This document shows positions 10,679 through 33,864 of a stretch of 33,864 bases of DNA, piece after piece. Origin of the DNA: Guillardia theta CCMP2712. Taxonomy: Eukaryota; Protista; Cryptophyta. A program made the position numbers and the translations under genes. The notes under the pieces are model-generated. The model searched no databases and was not told the origin of the DNA. It was given only the letters and a program-made list of their open reading frames with translations. The stretch covers positions 1 through 33,864 of the forward strand of contig NW_005434394.1 of assembly GCF_000315625.1 (NCBI RefSeq), in the 5' to 3' direction. The first letter of the stretch is position 1. Every line of letters begins with the position of its first letter.

Positions 10679-10869
10679 CGAGCGCAAGGAAGAATGATGA
10701 TGATGATGGGAAAGGGATAGGAGCACGGCAATGAGTTGACATCAATACTACAGCCGCATGATCTCCATTGATCGTGTCTTTTATTCATACATCTTGCACA
10801 TACCTCCTATCTCTACATCCTTTGTACACCCTCTCTACATCCCGCCTCCCTCCGAGTCCCTCCCCCTCT

Positions 10870-11100
10870 TCACAGCCGCATCGCCTCCCCCGTCGCCCCG
10901 TACACCACCGGCCGCTCTGCTCGCTCCAGAAGCTCGATGCAGTGCCTCAGCGCCGCAAGCTGCCGCTCCCTCGACGGCCCGCTCCTCCAGTCCCTCGCCC
11001 CCTCCTCGCCGCTCCTCCTCTTGGCTGACACAGGCGACGAGGGTCTCAGCACCTCGGCGAGCTCGAGGTCGGAGTCGGAGTCGGAGCCGTCGGAGCTGGA
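10870..11100 (-). CDS. Orphan ~106-aa multicopy gene, copy A (5' end lost in assembly gap)
   Basis: Reads ...SSSDGSDSDSDLELAEVLRPSSPVSAKRRSGEEGARDWRSGPSRERQLAALRHCIELLERAERPVVYGATGEAMRL*. Nearly identical to copy E, including the 3' flank with AATAAA. Confidence 0.65.
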   Translation of the reverse strand, partial: SSSDGSDSDSDLELAEVLRPSSPVSAKRRSGEEGARDWRSGPSRERQLAALRHCIELLERAERPVVYGATGEAMRL

Positions 11101-11740
11101 NNNNNNNNNNNNNNNNNNNNNNNNNNNNNNNNNNNNNNNNNNNNNNNNNNNNNNNNNNNNNNNNNNNNNNNNNNNNNNNNNNNNNNNNNNNNNNNNNNNN
11201 NNNNNNNNNNNNNNNNNNNNNNNNNNNNNNNNNNNNNNNNNNNNNNNNNNNNNNNNNNNNNNNNNNNNNNNNNNNNNNNNNNNNNNNNNNNNNNNNNNNN
11301 NNNNNNNNNNNNNNNNNNNNNNNNNNNNNNNNNNNNNNNNNNNNNNNNNNNNNNNNNNNNNNNNNNNNNNNNNNNNNNNNNNNNNNNNNNNNNNNNNNNN
11401 NNNNNNNNNNNNNNNNNNNNNNNNNNNNNNNNNNNNNNNNNNNNNNNNNNNNNNNNNNNNNNNNNNNNNNNNNNNNNNNNNNNNNNNNNNNNNNNNNNNN
11501 NNNNNNNNNNNNNNNNNNNNNNNNNNNNNNNNNNNNNNNNNNNNNNNNNNNNNNNNNNNNNNNNNNNNNNNNNNNNNNNNNNNNNNNNNNNNNNNNNNNN
11601 NNNNNNNNNNNNNNNNNNNNNNNNNNNNNNNNNNNNNNNNNNNNNNNNNNNNNNNNNNNNNNNNNNNNNNNNNNNNNNNNNNNNNNNNNNNNNNNNNNNN
11701 NNNNNNNNNNNNNNNNNNNNNNNNNNNNNNNNNNNNNNNN
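11101..11740. other. Assembly gap (640 N) between paralog copies A and F
   Basis: Run of N. Confidence 1.
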
Positions 11741-12020
11741 GTCCTACGACGTCCGTCCGGCCGTCCTCACCGCCCCCACCCCCCTCCCCCCCCTACCCCC
11801 CCCCCTGAATCCTCGCCTCTCCGGGCCGGGCCCGGCTCCTCCCATCCGGGCCCGGGGGCCCGTGGTATACGGTAGTACCGGCGGCGACGGTCGGACGGGC
11901 CCGGGAGGCCCGGCGATTCGGCTGTGAAGATGAGGGGGAGAGGCTTGCAGGGAGGCGGGCCGCTGTAGAGGTGTATGGAGAGCATGCAGTGCGGCTTCTG
12001 TTTTGCTGTCAACTCATTAC
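11741..12020 (+). pseudogene. Decayed sixth copy (F) of the orphan gene with internal deletion and GC-rich micro-insertions
   Basis: Retains colinear blocks cctctccg..ctcctcccatcc, ccgtggtatacgg, ggcgacgg, gggagg, cgattcggctgtgaaga, gagaggcttg.agggaggcggg, atggagagc and gtcaactcatt that match the CDS and 3' flank of the intact copies. Translates to PVVYG...AIRL*. Confidence 0.75.
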
Positions 12021-14396: not shown

Positions 14397-14849
14397 AGAG
14401 GAGGAGAGGCTTGGAGGGAGGCGGGATGTAGAGAGGGTGTACAGAGGATGTAGAGATAGGAGGTAAGAATGTGGAGGAGGCATACGATTAAAAGACAGTG
14501 TGAACTCAAAGTGAATACTTGCTGCCGCATCCGATTAATAGTAGGGGATTGCAAGAAGTCGGACTGCCAGTGATTGAGCGTCTCGGGTTCACACATAATG
14601 TTTTATCTTTGCTAGTTGAGCTTGTCGTTGAGAGGCTGGGATCCTACTTCTGTTTGGCACGACATACCCGATTACCAGCCGGATTTATCCCCTTGCCATC
14701 GGCTCGGCTTCTGAATGAACCGGCACGTAGATTAGACTCTTTCTATGAATCATGCCAATCAATGGAGCTCTTTTCAACATACGGTGGCGGCTGCTTCCTG
14801 GATCGAGCTTGCTGAACACAGCCTGTCGAGTCAAACTCACGACCATGAA

Positions 14850-15309
14850 TGATGTTGTACCCATGACATCGTTGCACTTGTAACGATGCGACAGCATCAT
14901 GCCGAAATAGCAAAAACTATAAGGGCAATATGAAGTTTTATGTGGAATACCTCAGGTACCGTGTCGGGTACATTTTGGTACTTCATCAGGCAAATACCGA
15001 CTGTCATGTGTACCATGCCCAACGTGGCAGGGCGCATCTTGTACGGTGGACCTGGCGGCTAGTCGTAAACTCAGTACATACGACAGGTAGAGTACTATGA
15101 GGATGAGACTTGACCGTACCATAGCAAGATCATTTACGACACTATTTAAGCTCAGAGAGGAGCGGACACCTTCGCTGCTCGTTTCCTCGCCACTCTTACA
15201 CATCAGTCCCTCATACGTTATCTTGCTCTGCTGATACATAAACAAATCTAGCTTCATTCTTCATTCTCCCAAGCACACCTTGCTACGTTGTGGAACAAGT
15301 CTCACATCA
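14850..15309 (+). repeat. 5' LTR
   Basis: Direct repeat of 22446-22905, with a single mismatch found by eye (G14890 vs A22486). TATA-like TATTTAA at 15143-15149. Confidence 0.97.
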
Positions 15310-15324
15310 GGTTAGAGCCTCGCG
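15310..15324 (+). promoter_or_regulatory. Primer-binding site, internal (half) initiator-tRNA-Met type
   Basis: GGTTAGAGCCTCGCG immediately after the LTR resembles the GGTTATG(A/G)GCCC PBS of Ty5/copia/Osser (anticodon-arm priming) but is one base shorter. Confidence 0.6.
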
Positions 15325-15331
15325 TTGAAGA

Positions 15332-16417
15332 ATGACGACAGCTTACCAACTAAACTGGCCTCCATCAAATGGCAACTCGATCCTTACAAGAGTTACACCA
15401 GAGAATGCAAGAACTGCCGCTCCAGCAATCGAAGAATTTATTCAAAGAGAGCTAAGCGGGAGATTCTTTGCATATCTCAACTCAGAAGGGAAAGAAGAGA
15501 AAATGCAAGCTTTCTTCGAGCACAACATTCCAATCTCAGAAGGATTATCAGTTGCAGAAAAAGAAGCCATTATCGTCAAGCGGAGAGAATTCGTGCAAAT
15601 AGCAGACCAAGCACTCATTCAAATTCTGTTTGCAATCTACGAAAATTGCAGCAGCAGAAAGAAAACCATAACGCGATATATGAAAGAGCAGCACAGCGAT
15701 TCCAACGCAGGGAAGTTTCACTTCGCCGCGATACGAGCGTGGAATGAATTTAAACAATTGGACCAACCGACTGAGTTGTCAAGCACGAAACAAACAACTC
15801 AAAGCTTGAAAGAACTCAACCAAGCACTAAAGTATGGAGGAGACTATACTACTTACGTCACCGATATTATTCGGATTCTTGAGAGATTCATGGAAAAAGG
15901 ACAGGACTGTGAACTCATCTTAGCCACTACCTGGGACCAGATCCAACAGGAATTGAAAAGTATCGATCGACACGGAGAACAAGGACAAATCGCAAAATGG
16001 ATTACCAACCAAATCCAACGAGCGTCAACCGAACCAACGTTCTACTACAACGAGAAACCCACCATTGAAAGCCTTCAACGATTTCACGAAGAACTCCTTC
16101 ATTTCACCAAACAAGGATCTACGAAAGACGGTAACGCAGTCCCAATCGTGCGCACTACCTACAGCCACCCTGGCTTCCCAAACAAACGGAAGGCGCCACA
16201 AGACGTAGATGGCACAAACCACAAGAAGAACAAGGTTTACCATACTACGGATCAAGGCGGTACCCAAGGGCAAGAATGTGCGATTTGCATTGAGTGCAAT
16301 TACCCCGCAAAGATCTACAAGAGTCACGGTACATCACAGCACGACAAGACTAAGATCGGCAAGAAATGGAAAAGAATTACCGGAGACCCAGTCAACGGAT
16401 TCCAGACTAAAGCCTGA
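15332..16417 (+). CDS. gag: Copia Gag (361 aa to the first in-frame TGA)
   Basis: First ORF after the PBS, helical and basic C-terminally, with a Cys/His cluster CAICIEC-x9-H-x4-H (16277-16342). The frame continues open past the TGA into pol. Confidence 0.8.
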   Translation: MTTAYQLNWPPSNGNSILTRVTPENARTAAPAIEEFIQRELSGRFFAYLNSEGKEEKMQAFFEHNIPISEGLSVAEKEAIIVKRREFVQIADQALIQILFAIYENCSSRKKTITRYMKEQHSDSNAGKFHFAAIRAWNEFKQLDQPTELSSTKQTTQSLKELNQALKYGGDYTTYVTDIIRILERFMEKGQDCELILATTWDQIQQELKSIDRHGEQGQIAKWITNQIQRASTEPTFYYNEKPTIESLQRFHEELLHFTKQGSTKDGNAVPIVRTTYSHPGFPNKRKAPQDVDGTNHKKNKVYHTTDQGGTQGQECAICIECNYPAKIYKSHGTSQHDKTKIGKKWKRITGDPVNGFQTKA

Positions 16418-18502
16418 AAAAAAAGAGAACAGCAAGCTACTCGAGCAGCCGCACAGCAAGTTGGGAACCAACTGCCGAACAAGGGCTCCGCGTACAACAA
16501 GCCCAAGTTTCAGGGGAAACCCAACGCAAAAAACTTTCGTCAGAAAAACCCCAACTGTTCCAATGAGAACAGCGGGAACTACCCAAAGTCAAAGTTCAAA
16601 AAGAACATGACGACTACGGGAGGCAATGATTTCATTGTGAATCTTGCTGAAGCGTTACAGCAGGTCGCAAAACGCGGCCATCATCTCGCTGAATCTAACG
16701 ATTACAGCACAGATGAGAAAAATGAAGAAGAACAAATTTCGGAAGGCGATGAAGAGGCTCCAACGCCTCCAAGACGCCTGAAAGAAACTGTCCGCAAGGC
16801 TGCCGCAAAAGGCAACAACGCTGCATCTTCATTCACTCAGGGTGCTAAAAACAACAGACATAAGAATAAATCTGAAAAAGATTACTCGAAATGTCTCGCT
16901 GCCCCACAACTACACAAGCGCAAAGAGATACCTTTTCAAACAGAGCAATTGGATGCGACTCTGTTTTCGAAAGTATCCACTCCATGGTTCCTAAAAGACA
17001 TGTTCGAGGTACCTAGACTCCTCATTAGGAATCTGGACCGACATAAAGTCTTCATGACCTGTAGATCAACACAGAACAAGCATTCGATGTTCGCTATCGT
17101 TGACTCAGGAGCCACCATCAGCGTCCTCTGCGACGCTAAGTGGATCCGAAAAAGATTTGCATACGAGAGCGAAATCACCGGAGTCGGTGGCCAGAAAGTC
17201 AACACATCCATGGGAGGCCTACTCGTAGGCAAGATGGAATCTGTCACCAACAAATCATATGCTTTCGCGACCCTTGCAACAATCATCCAAGACAAGAACG
17301 CTGCTGCAAATCTACTATCAATATGGAGAATTACGAACTCCAACAACACTGTTATTCATCATGGGAGCGTAACAAAAGGAACTCACGGTATCATCACTGC
17401 AAACAAGGATTTCATACCATTCTATTTTTGCCCTAAGACATATCTATGGTATGTCGAAATCAAACCGTCAGATGAACAAACTAATCGACTCTTCTCGTCA
17501 ACAAACTCAATACAATGGGACAAGAAATCCTTGCTACGAGAAATACAACAAGGAGAATTTCCTCTCAACTCTAAACCGCGATCAACAAACAAAAACACAG
17601 AAACTAAAACAGAACGCAAGTACCTACTACACCAAGGTATCGAACTTGAAAACTCTCGCAGATGGGGAGGGAACAAAGTGTACTACGAAGCTGCGAAAGC
17701 TTTCCAACCGACACCTATGAAATCCATACCCATAAGCATGCGGGACGTTCGTCAAGAATTAGAAGACATTACCTCGGAAGAATCTGTCGACAGCGAAACC
17801 GAAAGTGATCACTCCAGCTCAGAAGAAGAAAACCTTACTGAAGAGTCAAGGATAAGTGTAACACAAGATACTATCGACAAACAGACCAAGGACTACTTCA
17901 CAGATCCAAAATCGTTCGCAGATATTGATGACTTTACGAATACAACGATGGAAGAATTGGATGAAAATGACAAAGAATACGAGGAGCAACTAAAACACGA
18001 CAAGTCCGACCTCAAGGATATCTACCTCTATTCAACAGGAGAAAGAATACGAGGAACTAAAGCCTCAGCTATCCTCCTGAAATGGCATATCAAGACAAAT
18101 CATATCAACAAAAAATACCTATTCCAACTTGCCGACAGAATTGACGGGATGGAGGAACTGAGGAGACTCAGCAAAAAGACCCCACTACCAACTTGTCACA
18201 CTTGCCGCAGAGCAAAAAGCAAAGCGGCTGCATTACCGAAATTCAAAGAAAAGAGATCTGACAGCCGGTTCCATCGACTTCATGGAGATATGAGCACATA
18301 CCGACTAAGGTCCATCGAAGGAGCAAAATACCTGATGCTATGGAAAGACAGTTATAGCTCATTCAAAATGCCAGTCGGAATGTACAGCAAAAAAGGTTAC
18401 AGAAAATCTCTACGCCTAGTCACACGCAGATACAACAACGGGGTCTTCCCCAAAGTTGTACGCGTAGACAACGGCGGTGAGATGACGTCGAAAAATCTCT
18501 GA
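16418..18502 (+). CDS. pol: Copia Pol part 1: aspartic protease, acidic linker, integrase HHCC and first part of the catalytic core
   Basis: AIVDSGAT (D at 17102), KWHIKTNH...CHTCRRAK, RLHGD, LWKDSYS, VRVDNGGEM. Same frame as gag (16607-15332 is a multiple of 3, no stop in 16418-16606). Confidence 0.9.
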   Translation, partial: KKREQQATRAAAQQVGNQLPNKGSAYNKPKFQGKPNAKNFRQKNPNCSNENSGNYPKSKFKKNMTTTGGNDFIVNLAEALQQVAKRGHHLAESNDYSTDEKNEEEQISEGDEEAPTPPRRLKETVRKAAAKGNNAASSFTQGAKNNRHKNKSEKDYSKCLAAPQLHKRKEIPFQTEQLDATLFSKVSTPWFLKDMFEVPRLLIRNLDRHKVFMTCRSTQNKHSMFAIVDSGATISVLCDAKWIRKRFAYESEITGVGGQKVNTSMGGLLVGKMESVTNKSYAFATLATIIQDKNAAANLLSIWRITNSNNTVIHHGSVTKGTHGIITANKDFIPFYFCPKTYLWYVEIKPSDEQTNRLFSSTNSIQWDKKSLLREIQQGEFPLNSKPRSTNKNTETKTERKYLLHQGIELENSRRWGGNKVYYEAAKAFQPTPMKSIPISMRDVRQELEDITSEESVDSETESDHSSSEEENLTEESRISVTQDTIDKQTKDYFTDPKSFADIDDFTNTTMEELDENDKEYEEQLKHDKSDLKDIYLYSTGERIRGTKASAILLKWHIKTNHINKKYLFQLADRIDGMEELRRLSKKTPLPTCHTCRRAKSKAAALPKFKEKRSDSRFHRLHGDMSTYRLRSIEGAKYLMLWKDSYSSFKMPVGMYSKKGYRKSLRLVTRRYNNGVFPKVVRVDNGGEMTSKNL

Positions 18503-18504
18503 GA

Positions 18505-21468
18505 ATGTACGAAAAGAACAACATCTACCTGGAACGGGCTGCACCCTATGAGCACTGGCAGAATGGCAGAGCAGAATCTGGGATCTATTCATTAGACACC
18601 AGAACTCGACTCGCCATAATCCATTCCAATGTGCCGAAGAACCTGTGGCTCAACGCAATCTATTACAACGCTGAAATCGAAAATGCATTCTTACCTATGA
18701 GCAGAGGATCAGACATGAGCTGCTACGAAGCGTTCACAGGGAAAAGACCAAACGCGGAGAAATTTCACCCATTTGGATGCCTGTGCTATGTCCATGTGTT
18801 AAAAGACAGGAGATTAGCACAAGGAAGAGACAAAAAGCTAGGACCTACGGCAGAAGTCTGTGTATTCCTTGGATTCGCCCACCACCTAGGAATGAAAGGA
18901 TTCCTCGCAGCGTCTCTAAATGGCAAACAACTCTACGTCACAGAAAACAACATAAGCTTCAATGAAGAAGTGTTTCCTTATCGATTCTCACACCCTGAAG
19001 ATAAGACATGGAAAATACCATTCGGAGCTTGTAACGATTTCGGAGACGACAATGTCACCATACTCAATCGAGCAGGTGAACGGTTAACAGAGATGTCAGG
19101 ATCATCAGACTCAGAAGAAGAGATGATAGATAAGTCACATCACAGAAACCGACGTATGACAACAACTTACAAGAAATCACCGGCACCAACCTCCGATACG
19201 CTTCATCTTGAAGAAGACGATGACCTTCGACAGGACCCGAAAGTAATCGAGTTGGACACCTCGTTGGAGGTAGACAACCACTTGACAAGATCCTGCGAAC
19301 AAACATCAGTCGTCAGAGAAAGCGAAATAGAAGAAGAACCAGTCATCGATGAAGGATTATCATCCCTCAACAAAGAGCTGGCAAGCCTTCAAGTTGAGAC
19401 TCATAATAGCGGAGAAAAGGATTTCAGATGGGATTTAATCCCCGGAATACCTAAGAATCAACTACGGTCAGGGAAAATAGTCAACAAAGACACCGAACAA
19501 TCTGGTGACTCTGACAATGAATTACCTGGAGACCTAGAAGAATTCGCAACCTCCGACTATGTGAATAACATAGGCGTACCACACCAATTCCAGGCATCAT
19601 CGAAAATGCAATTCTGCGGTGTCATGGTCGATTGCTTCAACACGTCTAGACATACAACTGGGTGGTCACACGGACCAGCACAGAGAAATATCTACGACGA
19701 AAACCACTACAACCAAGAAATCGATACATTGATGTCATTCCTTCGAGAATGCAAGAAAGATGAGAAAAGAGAATACCGGATACAGCGGACACAGTTATTC
19801 TACACAGCCCTACTCACCGCAACGTCAGCCGTATCAACTGGAAAGGACGAACCTAGCATCAAGGAAGCCTTACATGCTACCAACCCAGAACGGAATCAAT
19901 GGATAGCAGCCATACAATCAGAGGCAAAATCATGGGAATCTTTGAAAGTTTTCGAACAAGTCGAAGAAATACCACAGGACAGAAAGAGCATTGGTTGCAG
20001 AATCATCTTAAAGCGAAAAAGGGGAGCGCAAGGAGAAATCCTCAAGTATAAAGCACGAGCCATTATCCAAGGATACAACGCAGTACAAGGCACCGATTAC
20101 CTGGACTCGTTCTCTGCCACAGCAAACCCCGTCACAATCAGACTTCTCTTGATTGTAGCTCGAGCAAAAGGATGGCGTATCCGCTGTCAAGATATACCTA
20201 CAGCATACCTCACAGCTTTCTTACCCACCGAAGTATACATCAGGACGCCGAAAGAATTCCAAGAGTTCTGCAACATCCATTCAAAATTCCTCAAGATACT
20301 CAAATCAGTATATGGTTTACCAAGCAGCGGGCGAAATTTCTGGAAGAAGCTATGTCAAGACCTTCGCGAATATGGCTTCACGCCATGTACAGCAGACGAT
20401 TGTCTCTTCTTGTATCGTGACAAACGAGGGGGAGAAATCATAGTCGCGCTGGTGGTCGATGACATAATTCAAGCAAGCAACGACGAAAATCTTTTCACAT
20501 CATTCGATGAATTCATGAACAACACAAAAAGATACAACACAACAACAGACAATGATCTGAGCTTCTATTTGGGAGTTGCCTACACCAAAGATTCAACCGA
20601 CAACCTTGTCAGCAATCAACAAGCTTACATCGAAAAGTGTTTGCACAGATTCAACCTAGATGGGATAGACCCAACAGGCAAAATCACAACCCCAATGGAC
20701 CCAAAGTTCACAATTGAACCAGAGGATATCGACGAACATGCACCTGAAGACCTTGTCAAGTTGTACAGAAGCCAAGTTGCTAGTTTGATCTACATCGCAG
20801 CATGGACACGACCCGAAATAAGCTACGCCGTATCACTGCTTTCCAGATACCTCACTTGTCCTACCAAGAAACTGTTAACGGCAGTACACAGAGTTTATGC
20901 TTACCTCAAAGGCACAAAAAACTTAGGGATCAGATATACTGATCAAGATAGCGCTGGACATGACAAGATGCACTTGATCGCCTATTGTGACAGTTCAGAC
21001 GCAGACTGCAAGATTACGAGCAGATCTACCGGCGGATATGTCATTTTCCTCAACGGAGTACCAGTATCATGGAAATCTGCAAGGCACAATATCGTTTCGT
21101 TATCCACCATGGAGAGCGAATACGTACAATGCACCTTGACAGCAATCGAGATTCTGTACTTACGTGAAACACTCGAATTCATGGGATACAAGCAGAAGAC
21201 AACCATATGCTATCAAGACAATGCTGCTTGCATCAAGTTGAGCGAGAATCCTGTGCACAAAAGTCGATCCAAACATATCAAACGACGCTGGCACTTTATC
21301 AGAGAATGCGTCGCAAGGAAAGAAATTACCTTGGAACCCATCAATACGAATGAACAGATAGCGGATATCTTCACGAAACCGTTACCTGTGGATCAATTCC
21401 TTTATTTAAGAGACCAACTCTTAAATATCCCTGAAAGCGAACGCTATCAGCGAAAGAACAAAAGATGA
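18505..21468 (+). CDS. pol: Copia Pol part 2: rest of integrase, reverse transcriptase, RNase H
   Basis: PYEHWQNGRAE, HPFGCLCYVH, CVFLGF...KGF, KYKARAIIQG, QDIPTAYL, KSVYGLPSSG, LVVDDI, YCDSSDA, SLSTMESEY, QDNAACI, KHIKRRWHFIRE, QIADIFTKPL. In the -1 frame relative to part 1. Confidence 0.95.
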   Translation: MYEKNNIYLERAAPYEHWQNGRAESGIYSLDTRTRLAIIHSNVPKNLWLNAIYYNAEIENAFLPMSRGSDMSCYEAFTGKRPNAEKFHPFGCLCYVHVLKDRRLAQGRDKKLGPTAEVCVFLGFAHHLGMKGFLAASLNGKQLYVTENNISFNEEVFPYRFSHPEDKTWKIPFGACNDFGDDNVTILNRAGERLTEMSGSSDSEEEMIDKSHHRNRRMTTTYKKSPAPTSDTLHLEEDDDLRQDPKVIELDTSLEVDNHLTRSCEQTSVVRESEIEEEPVIDEGLSSLNKELASLQVETHNSGEKDFRWDLIPGIPKNQLRSGKIVNKDTEQSGDSDNELPGDLEEFATSDYVNNIGVPHQFQASSKMQFCGVMVDCFNTSRHTTGWSHGPAQRNIYDENHYNQEIDTLMSFLRECKKDEKREYRIQRTQLFYTALLTATSAVSTGKDEPSIKEALHATNPERNQWIAAIQSEAKSWESLKVFEQVEEIPQDRKSIGCRIILKRKRGAQGEILKYKARAIIQGYNAVQGTDYLDSFSATANPVTIRLLLIVARAKGWRIRCQDIPTAYLTAFLPTEVYIRTPKEFQEFCNIHSKFLKILKSVYGLPSSGRNFWKKLCQDLREYGFTPCTADDCLFLYRDKRGGEIIVALVVDDIIQASNDENLFTSFDEFMNNTKRYNTTTDNDLSFYLGVAYTKDSTDNLVSNQQAYIEKCLHRFNLDGIDPTGKITTPMDPKFTIEPEDIDEHAPEDLVKLYRSQVASLIYIAAWTRPEISYAVSLLSRYLTCPTKKLLTAVHRVYAYLKGTKNLGIRYTDQDSAGHDKMHLIAYCDSSDADCKITSRSTGGYVIFLNGVPVSWKSARHNIVSLSTMESEYVQCTLTAIEILYLRETLEFMGYKQKTTICYQDNAACIKLSENPVHKSRSKHIKRRWHFIRECVARKEITLEPINTNEQIADIFTKPLPVDQFLYLRDQLLNIPESERYQRKNKR

Positions 21469-21703
21469 TATTCACAAAGAAACCTATCTCTCTTAGGTAA
21501 CTTTGATGAAAATAAATCACAATGAAAACACAAATTTACCTCGCTTTTGAGACCGATGTAACTATGCTTGGGGAACAAGCTACACTCTCAAATCAAAGCG
21601 GAATGACAGTGATAGTTTCTGAAACAACTGCACCACGAACACTGTTTGGCATTCCTGAAAGTTAACTTTCAGTGGATAGTTATACTTTGTTTGGAGGTAC
21701 AGG

Positions 21704-22278
21704 TCAGGACATCACACAATCATGGAGAATGGAGTAAGAGTTACATAGCACAGCTTCCTCACATTCGTGGGCTGATGCGATAACCTGACATACGTCATGA
21801 TTATCCATCAGGGCGATGGCGCGTAAATACATCCACCAGGGTGTATGAAACGTACTCTTACGGACAAACTTACCAAATCTATGATGGTATGTACGTACAC
21901 ACGACTCAGTTGTGTATGTGGCGCCATCTTACCTGGTAATAACAGTTTGCCGTCGGCCATGCTGATCTCTAGACACAGCAATGGTTGCTCTAAACTTCCA
22001 TTTGAAGCTAGTTGATATTGCAAAAGAGCAATATCAGGGTTATTTCTGCCTACCCACACAGTCAGCAGTGTGTTTAAAGATGCAGAACAACTTCTTATTA
22101 CCTCAAATATGTTTCACGCACTTCTTATCACACGTTCTGAAACGTGATGATGAGAAACGTTGAGACATGTGTGGAAACCTCGTGATCTGTTCACTTGGAG
22201 AGCTTTGAAGGCTGGTATGAGCAAAGATCTCGAACCTTCACAAGGGTACAACAAGGGGAACTCACCGTTCTCGACCAT
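21704..22278 (-). CDS. Putative spliced antisense gene inside the copia 3' region (tentative ~88-aa model)
   Basis: Minus-strand donors G|GTGAGT (22265), AG|GTTTCC (22178), AG|GTAATA (22101), AG|GTAAGA (21932) and TG|GTAAGT (21873); the first four pair with AG acceptors giving introns of ~54, 55, 56 and 54 nt. One joinable model is MVENAFKALQVNRSREVRETYLRNNPDIALLQYQLASNGSLEQPLLCLEISMADGKLLLPDLVIASAHECEEAVLCNSYSILHDCVMS*. Confidence 0.4.
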
Positions 22279-22436
22279 TGACGAAAAGTTGGTTCCGCCA
22301 TTTTCGCTCGATTGGTACCTTTTCGTGAAAGGTCACGTAGACCCTCATACCGACATTGGGACCTATGGGTTGGCCCGATGCTGTATGCTATCAAACAAAT
22401 GCTCTCATCTTCGGTGACGACACGCAAGTTTCGAGC

Positions 22437-22445
22437 AAGGGGGAG
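22437..22445 (+). promoter_or_regulatory. Polypurine tract
   Basis: AAGGGGGAG directly abuts the TG start of the 3' LTR. Confidence 0.85.
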
Positions 22446-22905
22446 TGATGTTGTACCCATGACATCGTTGCACTTGTAACGATGCAACAGCATCATGCCG
22501 AAATAGCAAAAACTATAAGGGCAATATGAAGTTTTATGTGGAATACCTCAGGTACCGTGTCGGGTACATTTTGGTACTTCATCAGGCAAATACCGACTGT
22601 CATGTGTACCATGCCCAACGTGGCAGGGCGCATCTTGTACGGTGGACCTGGCGGCTAGTCGTAAACTCAGTACATACGACAGGTAGAGTACTATGAGGAT
22701 GAGACTTGACCGTACCATAGCAAGATCATTTACGACACTATTTAAGCTCAGAGAGGAGCGGACACCTTCGCTGCTCGTTTCCTCGCCACTCTTACACATC
22801 AGTCCCTCATACGTTATCTTGCTCTGCTGATACATAAACAAATCTAGCTTCATTCTTCATTCTCCCAAGCACACCTTGCTACGTTGTGGAACAAGTCTCA
22901 CATCA
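22446..22905 (+). repeat. 3' LTR
   Basis: Direct repeat of 14850-15309, followed by the ATGAA TSD. Confidence 0.97.
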
Positions 22906-23905
22906 ATGAACGCCTTCAGATCCGACCGTCGTTGAACCGTCAGTGATACTAATGGCAGGAACTGCAAAGTTGCGTCCCGAGTCTGACGGTCAGTCGGGTA
23001 TCGCCGATCATGGGCCATCGCTTGCTGCTGGACAGCAGGCTGTGATCAACTTAGCTCGGCTGAGCTGCAACACTACTGATGATTTCCGAAGTCACAGTCA
23101 GGTACCACCGTGACGGTAAAACACACTGTGACAACTTGAATTCATTCATCGGCAACCCGAAGTTCAACGGTTGAGGCTTCAAGTCATCAGCCTTCCGAAG
23201 TTCCGAACAACCTGGCAACTTGGAGGGCCCGGCGCCTCGCCACCGGTGACTCGCCGGGACCGTGACGTCAGGCCAGTGTGCCGGGCCGTGCAGCCGCGTG
23301 ACTGCAGCCGCGGCCGGCGCTGTGACAGCCCGGAAACTTTGAACCGTGGCCCGGGGTGAGGGGACCGTCGGCCCTGTCCGACCGGCCGGGAAATCACCGT
23401 ACAGTAGTACTACAGGTGAAAAAATGCTTTATACTTTACTCAAAGTTAAGTGAAAACAACTAGGATACATGGACTGGGAAGCAGCATCCGAGCCGAAAGG
23501 TTACGGTTAGTCAGGTCAGTGACAGCTGTAGTCAAGAAGATAACGTGCTGTAGTAAAGTCCGGAAGTTGACGATGAAGAGGTCATATGGAGGCAGGTTCG
23601 GGTTCCAAAACTTGGATAGGTTGCAATTTGAAGCTTTAGCGAGAATTTTCAAATACTTTCCGATCTGTACAGGCAATTGCTGTGAGGGGTGGAAACAGAT
23701 ACTCCGCGGGGTAGGGGGTGGTGATTTCCGAGTGGAAATTTACGTGGAAGTCAGGTTTCGTACCAAGTCACGTTACCCCCAAAGAGTTCATCCCCAAGTT
23801 TACTACACAACAAGAAGTCGTTAACCGCTCCCTCGTGACCTCAAGTCCCCGCCCTCTCCCTACATCACCCGCAGCAGACCTGACCCCACAGCACCCTCGT
23901 CGCAC

Positions 23906-25195: not shown

Positions 25196-26268
25196 GTCGG
25201 ACTGTTGTGGGTGAGCGTGTGTGGTTTGGAAGGCGGTGGGGGAACCTGACACTTGAAGGGGGGGAGGCGACAGGCCTCTTTACCACACACCAACTCAGTC
25301 CGGCTTGTTACCACACTGTGACAGCCATCCGGTACAGAACGGAAATTCCGCCAGGTCTCAAGCTCTTTACCACACCTCTATAAATATTTTAGTCCAGCCC
25401 CCTCGTGACCTGGTCGGCGTTCCCTGAGCGGAACTCGTTGCGGAACTTCCCGAGGCCTCGGAACTCGGAACAATAATATAGCTACTGCCAGATATAGGCC
25501 ACTGTGACAGCCGCTGAGCCGCTCCGACGATCCGGTCGGATTATCGGATGGTCCGACTCTGGGGCCAGCGCCCCCGTACAGGGGCGGCGGGTCCAGGAGG
25601 GCCGCCGAGCCCCGGCGGTCAGATCATCATGGCACACCAGAACGGTACTGTCACAGTACTACTGTCGGACCCGGTGACCCGTGGGCGTCAACTTCTCAGT
25701 GACTCAAAATTGAGTTAAAGATCACCAGTCACCCGGTCACCGTCCTGGTCACGGTAACTCGTAAAGTTTTCAGCACTGATTTACTAAGTTCCGAAGTTCG
25801 GCATGATGATTTACCCGGGCCGCCCGCCCGGCCCGCGGCTGCCCGCCGCCGGGCCGGCCGACGGACGGCCGACCCTCTGGCCGCGGAGTCCCCGGGGCCC
25901 CCGGGAGCCTCGCCGGGTCCCGGAGTTGTCCGGAGTCCGGACAGGCTCCGGGAGTCCGATCCGATCGGCCGGGGGCCCGGTGGTACTCCGAGTCCGGACT
26001 CGGCCCGGGCCGGCGGCGCCGTCACTGAGACTGTCGGAGGCTCCAAGAGCTTCCCAGCCCGGATTTCTTCCTGGTGGGTCAGGGACCCCATCAACTCGAT
26101 CACCCCACCCCTAATTTCTCTTTTCATATCCACCCCTCCTAGAATTTACCTGATAAAAGGGGTAGTGGAATAGGATAACTGAGTACCCTACCCCAATAAA
26201 ATCTTCTCGTACCCCACCCCTTTGAGTTCGCAAAGTTGTTGAGGGAGACCAATAGAGGAACGCGATGG

Positions 26269-29200
26269 ATGTGCGAACTGGGAAGGGGGGAGGAGAGGAG
26301 GAGAGGAAGAGAGGCGGTAAGAGGAGAGCATGAGAGGCGACTAGAGTGACAGGGACAGGAGGAAGACTCATAGTCAGAGGCTAGAGAGAGAGAGAGCGAT
26401 GATGAAGAGCAGCAGCATCGAGATGGTAACCTTTGGAAAGGCCGTCGAAGTTGGAGCTGCAAGGAATGACGCGAACTAAGAGCTGATCCTCTTAGCGAGA
26501 TTGGACAACCATGAGCTGCTGTAGAGGAATAGGAATCCACTCGGGCAGCGACGATGATTATTCCATCTTGGAGGCATTGTGCCATTCCCTTGACTGCGAG
26601 ATGTACGGGGTGAAGGTATCCGAGCATGTGTCGCATTCAGATCGACATGAGAAGATGATGCTTCAGAGCATGATGCTCGACCATCTGTTCCTGCCAGCTC
26701 TCGTCAAGGTCTTGAGCTCGGAGGAGTCGGCAAGCATGCTGGACTGCATCGAGAAGGCAAAAGGGATGCAACGGAAAGACGCGAGCGCGATGAAGGAGTG
26801 GTCGAGGGAGATGAACCATTTCCAGATGTTCTGCTCGTACTGGAGGAAGGAGAACTTTCCTGAAGACCTCAGGAGGATGAATCAGTCCTTGGCAAGGTCC
26901 AAGAAGAAGCTCTACGACGTGACGACGAGCCTTGAAGGGGATGAGGATGCTCGTTGGTCATGGCGGAGTGTGACCGACGACGACAGGGTTCGTGTGGTCG
27001 ACGTGTCTCGGGAGGAGGAGGAAGGAGCTCCTGGCAAAGTGCCGCAGGATCCTGCAGCAGCTTCTGTTCAGATCATCCGCGTGAACGAAGGGCCGGAGCT
27101 CCACCATCGTACTGTTGGCATTCTGATCCTTTTGAAAGCACCAGGGGCCGTGGAGGCGTTTGACAGCCAGGTAGCAGCTCTGGAGAAGGAGAGAATCAGG
27201 CAGGAGGTGTCGAAGAGGCCCTGCAGGCTCGAGCTCTTGGGGAGTGGAGGGTGTAAAGGATACAGGTCAGCGATGGAGGTGAAGGAGGAGGAGTTGGAGG
27301 ACTTCAGCCTGGGCTCGTTCGAGCAGGCTGTGGTGAACGCGTTTCAGTCGAGCAGCTTCACTCACCCTCGACCTGTCAAGATCAAGCTGAAGGAGGTGAA
27401 TCTGATCGACGGAGGGGTGCGAGACTGTCCTCCCTACAGCAGAGAGGCAGGGAGCTTCTTCGGAGATGTCGTGCGCCGGTACAGGGAGCAGTCGGGTAGA
27501 GCGATAGAGCTAGAGACGTCAAGTCAGCTGGTGATGAAGTTCAGGATCGAAGCTGGGGCAGCGCATGCTCCATGGGACGATGGAGACGAAGAACTTCAGC
27601 GAGCTGTCTCCTCGGACGACGCCAGAATGGCTCAAGCAGCGCTGCGAGGGATGGGGAGGGTCTTCCCCGAGCAGCACGCGGTTGCCGTTAGGTTGCTCAA
27701 TCGGCTCAAGTTCGTCCTGGCAGAGCAGCAGGGGAGCCTGAAGGACTTCAGCAAGCTTGAATTTGCGATCCTCGTGCCCAACGTCTGGTCGCTGAGGCAG
27801 CAGACCATGTCGCAGATGCGAGCAGCTCTGTTCCCCGACGAACCCATGTCGTCCCAGCTCCGAAGGAGGGTGATTCCCCATCAGGACAGGGCGGTAGAGG
27901 AGCTGAGGGAGGCGATACGTAGGGGGCCCCCATCGACCCTCTTCGTCATCATCGCCGACCAGTCGCACTGGGGGCTGAACAAGGGGGGCCCTGTCGACAT
28001 GCTCGTCAACGACGAGCTGCTGCTGCGCCAGCGCAACTTCATCGTCCTCCTCGTCAGTGCTACCCCCTTCGCTAACCTGACCTGGCACAGCAGGATCCCC
28101 GAGCGGTACGTGAAGTTCGATGACGACGACCCTCTGCGGTCGATCGTCTCGGCCAGCAAGCTAAGTGACATGGGGAGGAAGAAGCGAGGAGGAGCGGGGG
28201 GGGAGGAACTCCACGTTGTGCGATGGAGGAGGAGGAGGCAGTCGGGTCGATGTGCTTTCTTTGGGCTGGAAGACTTTCTCAGGACGATGCCATCAGCCAT
28301 CCTCAAGGAGTGTATCCTGCCTGACGACGGTGAGAACTCGGAGAAGGAAGGAGGACTGCGGCGGCGGGATCAGCTGATACGGGGGGATCCGGAGCTTTCA
28401 AAGATCATGGAGCAGCACTGCAAGGGACGGGGGAAGAAGAAGGGGGAGGTGATCTTGAGGGAGCATGTCTGGCTTGCAGACGTCCTGCTGTCTTTGCTAT
28501 ACTTTCGCAAACTTCGGTGGGATGCAAAGGCCCAGGAGCTGCGGAGCCTCGAGCAAGCGTCTAAGTTTTTCCAGCTCGAGAAGCTGAGAGAGATGAAGCT
28601 GGAAAAGGAGTACAGGGACATGGCAGAGCGATGCTCGCTGGGGGTGATGAAGGCAGCAGAGGTCCTCCTGAACGAGATCAAGGCTGCGATATTGCGGCTC
28701 TCCACCTCCACCTCCTCCTCCTCCGCTCCCCCTCCTCTCTCTGCCGCCGCTCCTCTCGCCGACGCCTTCTTCGCTAAGTTGACCCACGAGGCTCGAGGAG
28801 GCGACGACCGGGTTGTGCATGCTGAGGAGAGCAGGTTCTTCCAGCTGAACGAGACCGACGCCATGGTCAAGGACCTCCTCCTCCACAACCGGCTGCCCAA
28901 CGGGCTCTGCGGACACATGAAAGTTGTCAGGCTTTTCAGCGTCGAGCAAGCGGACGAGATCGTCCGCGGCCTGAGGAAGAACCGAGACGAGCTGTTCGGC
29001 AAGAAGGCTCCTCCCTTTGCCGTCATCAGCAACCATGGCGGCTGCCCTCTCCTCGACGGCATCGAGCCGTACTTCCGCAAGCAGCCGATCGTGTACAACA
29101 GGGATCGGCCCCCTCGCTCTCTCAGCTCTCTGCTACGTGCGAGGGAGAGGGAGGAGGAGGCGAGGGGGGAGGAGGGGGGGGAGGGGGAGGGGATCCAGTG

Positions 29201-29354
29201 CAGGGACCTCGAGGGGCTACCAGGGATTCTGTTCCTGACGGAGAGGGGGAGGATGGGGGAGACTTTTCCTCACTCCTTTGACTGTCTTGACATGCGAGTG
29301 AGATGGTCGGAAGATACCACGTCTGTGATTCAGGTGCCTCCTGCTCCTCCTGCT

Positions 29355-29408
<54 letters not shown>

Positions 29409-30872
29409 CCGTCTTTCGTCCTTCGTCCCCTCCTCCCCTTTCCCCTCTGCCTCCTCCTGCGTGCCCACTGCGTCTTTTCTCTGAATTCTCACATCTCTCC
29501 TTGCTTCTCCAACCCTTGTAACATTCTCAAACCCTCCTCCATGAAACTCGTCTCCTCACTTCATCCTTGCAGGAGTTGGGGAGGCTGAGCAGGCATGCGG
29601 GCACGAGGGAAGCACTGCCGTTCAGCTCGGTAGACGATGCGATGGCGCTAGCGGATCAGCGGAAGTGGTTCGAGGAGGGGGGGAGGCCGATCGCTGTGTA
29701 CGCGAAGCAGGGGGAGGAGGTGATGGAGGTGGCGGAGGCAGGAGGAGGGAGGATGCGGCTGGTGGGGATGGCCTGGAGTCGGAGGAGCTGGACAAGGAGG
29801 AGCATGCTGAAGGTAGTCGGGTCGGGGAAGGTTTTGATGCTGAAAGACGAAGGGTCGAGTGAACTGTATGAGATGAAGGATGTCAGACTGGAAGGAGAGG
29901 AAGGAGGAGGAGGAGGAGGAGGAGGAGGAGGAGGAGGAGCGAGAGAGGATACGACGGACTTGGATCTGACTGGCTGCATGCTCATCCACTTCCCCAGCTG
30001 CAGTCGAGCTGGCAGCTCGAGCTTCAACTGGCGGGAGAGCAGATGCCTTGAGATCGTCGACCATGACCGCGTGTCCTCTTTGATCCGGGTCAGGAATCGC
30101 TCGAAGTCCACGGACCCCAGCAGGTTCGGAGCAGGAAGCTGTTACACGATCGTGCGGGATGCTGGAAGTCTAGAGTGGCTTACGAGCAGCAGCAACTGCC
30201 CGTACGGGGGAGAGCTCAGGGAGCTGGAGCACGCGCTGCCCTGTGCTCTTGTCAGCGAGCGGTTGTACGACGCGATCGGAGAAGCGGTGGAGGTGGCGGA
30301 GGTCAGCAGCCGGGAGGTGTGGAAGTGTATCAGGCTACAGTCGAGGCTCCACACGCACGTGAGGAGGAGGGAGAAGGGAAAGGACCTCAAGATCAACTAC
30401 GACGAAAACGAGCTCCATGACTACAGGATGAAGCACGTAGCCGTCTCCTCCTCCTCCTCCCCTCCTCCTCGCAGCTCGTCGGCACGGCTGCCATCGAGCA
30501 CTGCGACTGGTGTGAGGACCCTGACGAGAGGGGGAGGCACAGGCTACGCTTCCTCCTGCATGCCGAGTGTCAGGCCGGCAAGACAGGAGCGTACCTCTGT
30601 CTCCTCCACCTCCTCCGCCAGGAGATCAGCAGCAGCTCCTCGTCTGCCTTCGCCTGCCTGCCGCCACTTGGGAGCTGGCAGGAGATCGAGGACGAGCGGT
30701 GGCAGGAGAGGAGGGCATGGGAGTTGCCGTACTGGGAGGACCTGGCGAGGCAGCAAGTGGACGAGAGGGAGATGAAGGAAGGGAGATACTACAAGCTGAT
30801 CATCTTACAGAGGTTGAGGTTGCTGATCAAGTGCAGGATGGAGGAACGCTCTTCCTCCTCTCCCGCCTCTTG

Positions 30873-30913
<41 letters not shown>

Positions 30914-33864
30914 GGAAGCGGAGCTACGTAAGGAAGCTGCAGCAGGCTGCGACGGCTGACAACTTGGAGGGGGAGTGTGTACAAGGGGAAACCCTCCAGC
31001 AGCTCGACAGTTCGCTGCGAGGGTTGGCGGAATGCCCGATCAGAGTGGAGGAAATGGCAGGAGGAGTCATAATTAGGGTGTCCGACGCCGCGGGCCTGCG
31101 GAGGGTCCTGGAGTGGGACAACAGCAGCGGGTCCTCTCGAGCTGTCGCTGTACTGCTGAGCAGGGGGCTGAAGACTCGCTACGACGAGAAGCTGATAGAG
31201 GTGAGGGAGGACGGAAGTCTCTTCCTGCCTTGTCAGACGAAGCTGTGGGATGTTCATGGTATCACATGGAAGATCCATCCAGAGGAGGAGGAGGAGGAGG
31301 AGGAGGAGGGGGAGGAGAGGGCAGGTCGAGTTGCCAAGCATGAGTATGCCGGCCGCTGCTCGCGATCGCTCGACTCTTACCTCAAGGGGGCCAAGGTGAA
31401 ACTGCTGAGACTTGCAAACGTCATGCGACGATTCGATCTTCGGAAACTCTTCGGCCCCGACAGGCGCGACTGGCCGTCCATCTCCTTCCCGTTCTTGAAC
31501 GAGGAGACGACTGGTTACTTCAGGCTGGACTGGGAGGGGAAGGTGGCAGGGGCTGTGGAGCAGGAGGCGGAAGGATCGATCCGCCACTGGGTGTTCACCC
31601 CGTCCCACGGACGAGACTCTGAGAGTTCAAGGACGACGGGGCAGTTGGCCTATCTCGACAGGTCGCAGGCGTTCAAGGAAGGAGGGAGGAAGGTACCTGT
31701 GCGACAGGTACTGGTAGTGAGGCCGGACGAGGAGGAGGGAGGAGGAGAGTTCAGCGCATACCTCAACGACGTTGGCGGCGAGTTCATAGTGGTCTCGATG
31801 CCTCGGCGGATGACGTTGACCACGGACATGCGGAGCATCGGGTTCAGTGAGGAGCAGTTCTCAGCTCAGCTGGACAGGGCAGGAGGGCCGCTGGTGCTGA
31901 CGCCTGAGACGGGCGGGATGGGCTACACGAGGATGTTCATCCAGATCTTTGCGCACCTGCTGGGGCTAGAGAGGGTCTGGGTGCTCGACGATGACGTCAT
32001 CGACTGCTACGAAGAGGACCTGGACGCGACGTTCGCGTCTGCCCCCCCCAGGCGCCAGCCCCTCCTTCCCTGCTCGTTCGCCCGCATCATGCTCACTACA
32101 CAGCGAATGTTCGACGAGCGGAGCAGCAAGGCTCTCTATGACCCCAGCTGCAACCGACCTGCCTGCCCCTGGACCCGCTCGTTCTTCTCCTCATCCCTTG
32201 AGCTATCCGGCACGTCGGCAGACTGCCGAGCTGTGCGGGGGCTGAAGGCGAGAGAGGCTGCTCTAGATCCGCTGGAGGTTGACAGGACGGTGTCAAACGT
32301 CGAGGATTTTCGAGGGGACCTGGACGGATATGCAGTGATCGGGATCAGAGGAGATGCGGGGAGGAGGGAAGGGAAGGGAGCTTTCGGTATCAGCAGCGAC
32401 ATCTCCTCCTTCTACCTGCTCAACGTCCGGTCGACCGTCCTCAAGGGACTTCTGTTCCCACCCAAGAGGTTCGGGGAGGAGGGAGAGTTCTACCGTCTGT
32501 GCGAGGCGAGCGGGCTCGCTGTGCTCCAAGTCAACCGCTTCTTCTTCCACAAGGCAGAGCCGAGCCTCCTGGGCAGACTCCATGTGGAGCCCTGCTGGAC
32601 AGGAGGAGGGGAGAGGAGGGTCCGCGTGCTTATCAACGGGGTTCACGTGTACGACGTGGTCACGTCCCAGGACAAGTCCAGCTGCAGCGACGTCTGGCCC
32701 TGCCTGTTGGAGGAGAGCAGGAGGAGGAGGGAGGAGCGTCTGGTGCCGAGGGTGTCGTGCATGATAGAGGGGAGTGAGAGAAGGCTCCAGGTCGGAGAGG
32801 ACGAGGAGCTTGACGACAGCTGGGAGTTTGCTGGGAAGGTCTGCGATCAGTTTGACATCAGGGTGTTGCTACCGTTGAAGCCGGAGGTCAAAATCTCTCT
32901 TGACTCGCTCTCCGTCCATCGGGGCCGGCGAGCCGTCGGGCCTCGGAGAGCCAGTCGGTTCCTTGTGGACTGCGTTGACTACCTGCGAGCGGACGCAGTG
33001 CTCTTCTACCCGCCCCGCAACGAGACGGACGAGGAGGAGGAGGAGGAGAGGACCTTGTTCGAGGAGCCGGAGACGGGCTGGAAGGTGTTGGAGGGAGGAA
33101 CCTTGGACAGGGGAGGAGGAGGCACGTCGATTTGTATCTTGTGGGACTACTTCTCCGAGTGTTCAAGGAGGCTGTTTACAGCGCTAAGGAGACTGTCGGG
33201 GGAGGCAGGGGGAAACTTGTCCAGGGTTACCTTCCTCCTCCCAGCGGTGATGTACGCAAGGAACCAGCGCGCGATCGAGGATAAGATTCGTGTGTTGGTG
33301 GTGGGGGGGAAGAAGTTCAAAGTTGAGAGGAGATGGAGCAGCTGCCTGGAGCATGGCATGTTCGATGACATTGACAAGGAGGAGGACGAGGACGAGGACG
33401 AGGACGAGGAGGAGGACGAGGACGAGGACGAGGACGAGGAGGAGGGAGGGAGAGGCGCGAGGAGCGGGTATAGGAAGGGTCTCCCGAAACTGGAGAGAGT
33501 GTCCAAGTCTGTCCAGCAGGAGGAGGAGCAGTCTTTGATCGTGATCAGCTGTTCAACTGATAGCTCGGAGGGCTCGCATGACGTGAAGAGGGAGCAGGAG
33601 GGAAGGAGAGGGGAGAGGAGGGGAGAGGAGAGGAGGGGAAGGGAAGATGCGAGTAGGGAAGTTGAGAGCAGAGAGCAGGAGAGGAGGAGAAGGATAGAAG
33701 AAGAGGAAGCAAGGATGCAAGAAGATTCGGAGGAGGAGAGGAGAGGAGGAGAAGGGCGACTATCGTCAGCCAAGGTCAGCGTCTGCTCGACCCGTCATGC
33801 TTGTTCTGACATGTTGTCCAGGACATGGGGGAGGAGGAAACGTCGGATAAAGAAACTTCGACCA
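26269..33864 (+). CDS. GREB1-like protein: circularly permuted SF2 helicase/ATPase plus TAGT (JGT-like, GT-A fold) glycosyltransferase; runs off the window
   Basis: Main exons ~26533-29333, 29573-30436 and 30475-(33774 or window end). Helicase motifs: IIADQSHWG (II, 27957), VSATP (III, 28056), GRMGETFP (V, 29247), IQ|ELGRLSR (VI, rebuilt across intron 29334-29572), then RFLLHAECQAGKTGAYL (Walker A, ~30550-30597). TAGT motifs: WVFTPSHGR (31588), QVLVVRP, GGMGYTRMFI, VWVLDDDV (31987), FYLLNV...FGEEGEFYRLCEASGLAVLQVNRFFFHK (to 32553). The frame is open from 30475 to 33864. First exons are uncertain. Confidence 0.85.

Follow-up and report, generated by a model that had tools for sequence, protein, structure and literature searches.

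A transcribed GREB1-family gene encoding a permuted helicase and a glycosyltransferase in the cryptophyte Guillardia theta

GREB1 is known chiefly as a cancer-related, oestrogen-induced gene. Animal GREB1 and GREB1L (human GREB1 has 1,949 amino acids, aa) join a circularly permuted superfamily 2 (SF2) helicase module, recognised by the shared Pfam family PF20692, to a C-terminal TAGT-type glycosyltransferase of the GT-A fold; for the human helicase, a lack of catalytic activity has been described. The sole characterised GREB1, the human one, O-GlcNAcylates a protein, oestrogen receptor alpha (ER-alpha), and GREB1-like proteins occur in Cryptomonada, Haptophyta, Heterokonta and others (PMC7968844); because Cryptomonada are listed there, the family was already known in the cryptophyte lineage. 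The kinetoplastid base J glucosyltransferase (JGT) and the phage TET-associated glycosyltransferases (TAGTs, PF20691) have the GT-A fold and its conserved Asp pair in common with these proteins. Here, we analysed contig C280 (NW_005434394.1) of Guillardia theta CCMP2712, the whole of which forms our 33,864-nt window and which belongs to an 87.1-Mb assembly of 669 contigs. Its plus strand carries a transcribed gene for a giant GREB1-family protein that combines a permuted helicase with a glycosyltransferase.

The plus strand holds three long open stretches, each in a frame of its own (26496-29585, 29522-30772 and 30421-33864), the last of which runs for 1,148 codons without a stop up to the contig end, in a region where no other frame exceeds 164 codons. 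The profile of the circularly permuted SF2 module of GREB1 (cpSF2-GREB1, PF20692) matches the first stretch with an E-value of 8.8e-87 and 292.8 bits against a curated cut-off of 26.2, and it spans the three frames consecutively (profile positions 2-419, then 415-658 at E 5.6e-15, then 660-706). Because the profile runs on through all three stretches, we regard them as one gene, which extends from 26511 to the contig end and comprises at least 2,345 codons in at least four exons. The encoded protein starts with a lineage-specific N-terminal region, followed by the permuted SF2 module, a TAGT-clade GT-A domain and a cryptophyte-type tail, and the Walker A motif shares one exon of 1,100 codons with the TAGT domain, so that the two hallmarks of the GREB1 family stand on the same polypeptide. 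An earlier, preliminary description of this DNA had named the motifs AECQAGKTG, PSHGR, LVV, GMGYTR, WVLDDD and LLNV..NRF, all of which we found in the translation, and its proposal of a GREB1 architecture is borne out by the PF20692 score, the TAGT homologues and the GT-A fold. The gene is an additional, divergent member of a known family, to which it contributes a gene model and details at the level of single residues, and not a novel type of system.

Transcription of the gene was observed in three transcriptome-like contig runs (X1, X2 and X4), which we placed on positions 28000-33864, while a raw-read RNA run (X18) provided no usable depth over the gene. Positions 1739-2873 of X1 record 1 (2,894 nt) match 28000-29134, and, assuming that this record is colinear upstream, the transcript would start near 26262, ahead of the earliest in-frame ATG at 26511. 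For the first intron, X1 record 2 links 29330 with 29570, and depth is zero at 29372-29567 in all three runs; its removal, predicted at 29334-29572 in the preliminary description, is therefore seen in RNA-derived contigs. This intron interrupts helicase motif VI, which splicing restores (IQ/ELGRLSRH), and the G. theta paralogues are interrupted at the same place. Both this intron and the third one carry a branch motif about 13 nt from the acceptor (CTCAC and CTGAC, respectively). Coverage by X1 record 6 is unbroken over 31324-33364. The frame had earlier been thought to stay open to the window end; there is indeed no stop, but the long exon ends at 33774, because an overlooked 47-nt intron (33775-33821), skipped in X1, X2 and X4, follows it. 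X1 record 7 (742 nt) extends past the window end, which indicates that the transcript continues beyond the contig, and no overlapping contig that would continue the 3' end of the gene was found in the assembly, where only low-complexity matches were returned. Two further observations concern the RNA data and transcript-derived proteins. The apparent X1 depth of 72,010 at 30744-30939, compared with about 100 in neighbouring bins, is an artefact and not expression, as a poly-Ser TCC repeat attracts contigs of many other transcripts. Moreover, Hanusia phi protein P0001 (EukProt, transcript-derived) contains, at about 385-450 after '...TTTLIQ', some 65 residues unlike any Guillardia copy, which, lying at the place of the first intron, look like an in-frame retained intron.

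In the spliced protein, the helicase motifs appear in the order II (DQSH, residue 483), III (SAT, 515), V (GRMGETF, 913), VI (QELGRLSRH, 942) and Walker A (1261), and this residue order confirms the circular permutation that had been proposed. Walker A is conserved, in contrast to the inactive state described for the human helicase, and many family members retain the same signature, AECQ[IVA]GKTG. Motif II is altered: the catalytic Glu of Walker B, part of the DExH sequence of active SF2 helicases, is replaced by Gln (CAG codon at 27960-27962). All 37 family representatives bearing motif II have DE[CSA]H, and DQSH is unique to the C280 copy. Among the conserved columns of the permuted module, 13 of 87 are altered in this copy, versus 1 to 4 of 84-85 in the paralogues. 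In P-loop ATPases, a Walker B Glu-to-Gln replacement permits ATP binding and blocks hydrolysis.

The glycosyltransferase domain was recognised by homology as well as by fold. A search of 1.84 billion representatives with a profile built on the cryptophyte domain retrieved 325 proteins (E <= 1e-3), and each of the 30 C-terminal domain homologues that were aligned matches PF20691. The AlphaFold2 model of the domain (predicted local distance difference test, pLDDT, 78.9; predicted template modelling score, pTM, 0.82) gave a best VIA-align Z-score of 13.5, to GnT-I, with the top 50 chains all being GT-A enzymes or related nucleotidyltransferases. Among the predicted structures of the ESM Atlas, a cluster of phage TAGTs comes closest (template modelling scores 0.50 and 0.58), and Foldseek against the PDB returned weak matches (E 2e-3), all of them to GT-A enzymes; a profile search of PDB sequences found no match, and the sole match to the TAGT region in a word-index protein search was a Hanusia phi fragment. 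The conserved core, at about 31588-32553, agrees with the range of 31580-32555 outlined in the preliminary description. Its acidic metal-binding motif, a feature of the TAGT/JGT class, is present, with D181 and D182 invariant in 30 sequences. The family consensus at this motif is DDN, so that DDD in the C280 copy departs from it and does not speak for an intact motif; the DxD, earlier cited as intact in favour of a candidate DNA modification system, carries little weight, since other near-invariant residues are altered too. Of the 43 TAGT columns conserved at >=80%, 12 are changed in this copy (including N183D, R302G, T316S, S318D, Y320S, D345E, K361Q and H367F), versus 1 of 42 and 6 of 44 in paralogues. 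The family-invariant residues are nevertheless all kept (G159, R162, Q166, W178, D181, D182, G299, S321, N326 and E344). The G-E-E sequence, which stands where the family has W-E-D, is probably the counterpart of the xED catalytic-base motif of GT-A enzymes.

Exactly four loci with the permuted SF2 module were found in the genome by six-frame and profile searches, and the same four are its main TAGT loci: two inverted ones on contig C136 (GUITHDRAFT_146844 and GUITHDRAFT_146838), one on C229 and the one on C280. The paralogues share domain order, the place of the first intron and the tail, with 45-47% identity over the compared region, and in a tree with three G. theta copies the TAGT domains of this species form a single clade (support 100/100). 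They differ in several respects: the C136 copies carry an N-terminal caspase domain, which the C280 copy lacks (no caspase open reading frame (ORF) lies upstream of it in the window); the paralogues have DESH and DDN in place of DQSH and DDD; and only the C280 copy shows a frame change at the second position. It also has the lowest profile scores of the four loci, and, among the three copies placed in the tree, its terminal branch is the longest (0.80 versus 0.55 and 0.28). Judged by its sequence, the C280 copy is the most divergent of the four in both catalytic domains. Two observations on other loci may be added. The caspase-fused GREB1-like genes on C136, at 14600-23900 (plus strand) and 52000-61300 (minus strand), are near-identical, inverted and about 30 kb apart, which points to a recent inverted duplication. 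A short fifth match to the TAGT profile, outside the four GREB1-like loci, lies at C12:610670-610873 on the plus strand (E 1.4e-8, profile 39-114, 80-aa open frame) and could be a fragment or else an exon belonging to another gene.

With moderate confidence, we favour as the best explanation overall that G. theta has in the C280 gene its fourth GREB1-like gene, the most divergent of the set, with a product working as follows. The glycosyltransferase would bind a nucleotide sugar and a metal through the two invariant Asp residues (of DDD here) and would pass the sugar on to an acceptor hydroxyl. Judging from the analogous human GREB1, a protein would be a likelier acceptor than an oxidised DNA base, and, more generally, a protein or other non-base acceptor would be likelier than base glycosylation; to our knowledge, ER-alpha itself does not exist in algae. 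A protein is favoured because no TET/JBP hydroxylase that would make hydroxymethyluracil (hmU) or hydroxymethylcytosine (hmC) was seen: a six-frame search of the whole 87-Mb assembly with Tet_JBP (PF12851) gave a best match of only E 0.7 and 14.7 bits, a negative that is moderate and does not prove absence, as the search treated exons one at a time and included no positive control. The helicase module, with Walker A kept and Gln in Walker B, probably binds ATP and hydrolyses it poorly, and we therefore propose that, rather than being a motor, it would act in clamping, targeting or regulation in a nucleotide-dependent manner. Because many conserved glycosyltransferase residues are altered, the enzyme may differ in specificity from its three paralogues or be less active than they are.

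The moderate weight of that negative search is one of several points that count against the proposed mechanism. Enzymes that glycosylate DNA bases do occur within the TAGT clade. The single-sequence match of the C280 copy to Pfam TAGT (18.4-21.3 bits, profile 58-94 around the Asp motif) falls below the curated cut-off of 27.5, and the assignment of W-E-D as a catalytic base draws on known GT-A enzymes. The Glu-to-Gln codon was read from DNA only, at a position just outside the RNA-mapped 28000-33864. Finally, if the frame change at 30437-30474 were a real frameshift, the protein would lack both Walker A and the glycosyltransferase domain.

This frame change bears most directly on an alternative in which the gene is a decaying or broken paralogue under relaxed constraint, whose transcript no longer yields a full-length enzyme; we consider this unlikely. 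The preliminary description had placed a second intron at 30437-30474, which our data do not confirm. The zone, masked as a repeat (30434-30476) in the RNA mapping, holds no adenosine from +4 to -3 and hence no branch-point A, frame B read through it goes on with HVAV, which matches RHVAV, QHDAV and SYEAV of homologues, and the RNA contigs of X1 and X2 end at it, as they do at RNA-retained low-complexity sequence elsewhere in the gene. A 38-nt intron is doubtful, and the zone is explained as well by a one-base mistake of the assembly within the C/T run, or by a genuine frameshift, as by a micro-intron. The acceptor cannot lie farther downstream, because RNA covers 30477 onward; a 62-nt intron (30437-30498) was ruled out in this way, with RNA contigs covering 30477-30498. 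A word-index protein search with exon B found no match, so it offered no transcript-derived protein across the zone. Exact look-ups of the products of two guessed contig ORFs returned no record either. While these features, together with the motif II replacement unique in the family and the alteration of 28% of conserved TAGT columns, fit decay, the frame downstream of the zone stays open for 1,100 codons in DNA of about 61% G+C, where by our estimate a stop would occur by chance about every 33 codons, which argues that the gene is intact or was so until very recently. Also at odds with decay are the retention of the family-invariant glycosyltransferase residues, expression with correct splicing of the other introns, and a terminal branch (0.80) below the family median of 0.94; the assembly error mentioned above would account for the frame change equally.

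Less probable still, in our view quite improbable, is that the protein is a DNA base glycosyltransferase, the helicase tracking or opening DNA while the TAGT domain glycosylates hmU or hmC in the manner of JGT and phage TAGTs, which would mean an undescribed DNA modification in cryptophytes. Such a system had been put forward in the preliminary description and is not supported by our results. Consistent with it, the domain falls in the TAGT clade, and many protist members, unlike human GREB1, retain well-conserved Walker A and DE[CSA]H motifs, which fits an active nucleic-acid enzyme and makes a nucleic-acid role conceivable. On the other hand, JGT and the phage TAGTs pair with a TET/JBP hydroxylase, of which the search described above detected none in G. 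theta, and they are not fused to a permuted SF2 module; the Walker B Glu is replaced in the C280 copy; the only characterised GREB1 modifies a protein; and the family has already been reported in Cryptomonada. We found no literature linking Guillardia with hmU or base J.

A broader and highly improbable idea unites the four G. theta genes into one defence or cell-death system whose sugar acceptors would be nucleic acid or chromatin, in which the DESH copies, two of them caspase-fused, might act as ATP-driven effectors and the DQSH copy as an ATP-locked sensor or regulator; if true, this function would have no counterpart among those known for animal GREB1. That two separate, adjoining genes encode the helicase part and the glycosyltransferase part, as the two reading-frame changes between them might suggest, is barely credible, given that profile positions 660-706 of PF20692, Walker A included, share one unbroken exon of 1,100 codons with the TAGT domain, that the three paralogues hold both parts in one frame without a break at the second position, and that RNA depth is even over both parts.

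For a fourth, divergent GREB1-like gene, as we favour here, the interest lies in what its setting offers. Protist versions keep helicase motifs that the human protein has reportedly lost, and could reveal the original role of the pairing of helicase and glycosyltransferase. G. theta can be cultured and holds four diverged copies, one with a natural Walker B Glu-to-Gln replacement, which allows hydrolysing and non-hydrolysing forms to be compared. Similar modules occur elsewhere among protists: the GREB1-like protein GBG30820.1 of Hondaea fermentalgiana has a TAGT domain, which matches the cryptophyte profile at E 4e-57, and, like other protist homologues, permuted SF2 modules with DECH and SAT. 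Unlike the C280 protein, it is 4,793 aa long, bears two helicase modules and belongs to the stramenopile lineage. The coordinates of all features of the C280 gene are collected in Table 1.

Table 1. Features of the GREB1-like gene on contig C280, in positions of the window
Feature	Position	Strand	Basis or remark
Probable 5' untranslated region	26262..26510	+	Start from X1 record 1, if colinear upstream
Exon A, 941 codons	26511..29333	+	ORF, translation, PF20692 profile 2-419; N-terminal region of about 390 aa and first half of the permuted SF2 module, to the start of motif VI
Helicase motif II, D-Q-S-H (gac cag tcg cac)	27957..27968	+	Direct DNA reading
Intron 1, 239 nt, GT..AG	29334..29572	+	Spliced in RNA contigs
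Exon B, 288 codons	29573..30436	+	PF20692 profile 415-658, RNA contig coverage; middle of the permuted SF2 module with poly-Gly insert
Frame-change zone (+2), C/T-rich	30437..30474	+	38-nt (or 32-nt) GT..AG intron, or indel
Exon C, 1,100 codons	30475..33774	+	Open frame, PF20692 profile 660-706; end of the permuted SF2 module (HCDWC motif, Walker A), linker, TAGT domain, lineage-specific tail, acidic low-complexity stretch
Walker A (motif I), AECQAGKTG	30562..30588	+	After motifs II-VI
TAGT-clade GT-A domain	31447..32613	+	AlphaFold2 model, fold matches, homologues
Metal and nucleotide-sugar motif, D-D-D	31987..31995	+	Alignment A3: D181 and D182 invariant; N183D
G-E-E (family W-E-D)	32473..32481	+	Alignment A3: near-invariant Asp changed to Glu
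Tail, about 270 aa	32554..33369	+	Possible beta-grasp-like part, then alpha/beta part; no known family
Intron 3, 47 nt, GT..AG	33775..33821	+	47-nt skip in X1, X2 and X4
Start of exon D	33822..33864	+	Gene runs past the contig end

Both ends of the protein set it apart from animal GREB1, as its N-terminal region and its tail are lineage-specific. The N-terminal region of about 390 aa is conserved among the G. theta paralogues, and a search with it among the collected proteins retrieved a G. theta paralogue only. Residues 1-390 matched no Pfam family at E-values up to 10, and accordingly no match to the animal-type N-terminal zinc-binding region was found at that threshold; this region probably marks the animal branch only. 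The tail is common to the paralogues, to Hanusia P0013 and, weakly, to two other proteins in a hidden Markov model search of the collected proteins, and has so far been seen only in cryptophytes and a few relatives. No Pfam match at E up to 10 was obtained with the tails of the C280 copy, two paralogues and Hanusia P0013. Its AlphaFold2 model (pLDDT 67) gave weak, unspecific fold matches with a best Z-score of 6.1, and an ESM Atlas feature search with it produced no usable match. A RAMA domain was considered for the tail and rejected on the same grounds (no Pfam match at E up to 10; fold matches weak and unspecific, Z <= 6.1).

Farther upstream on the contig, whose G+C content is otherwise 45-62%, the G+C fraction drops to 0.26 at 11001-12000, and an ORF overlapping this stretch (10758-11927) matches no Pfam family. 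Three consecutive long ORFs occupy an A-rich stretch on the plus strand (15332-21468), the last of which (18505-21468) encodes an RVT_2 reverse transcriptase together with an SH3-like domain of retroviral type, indicating a Ty1/copia-type retrotransposon some 5 kb ahead of the gene.

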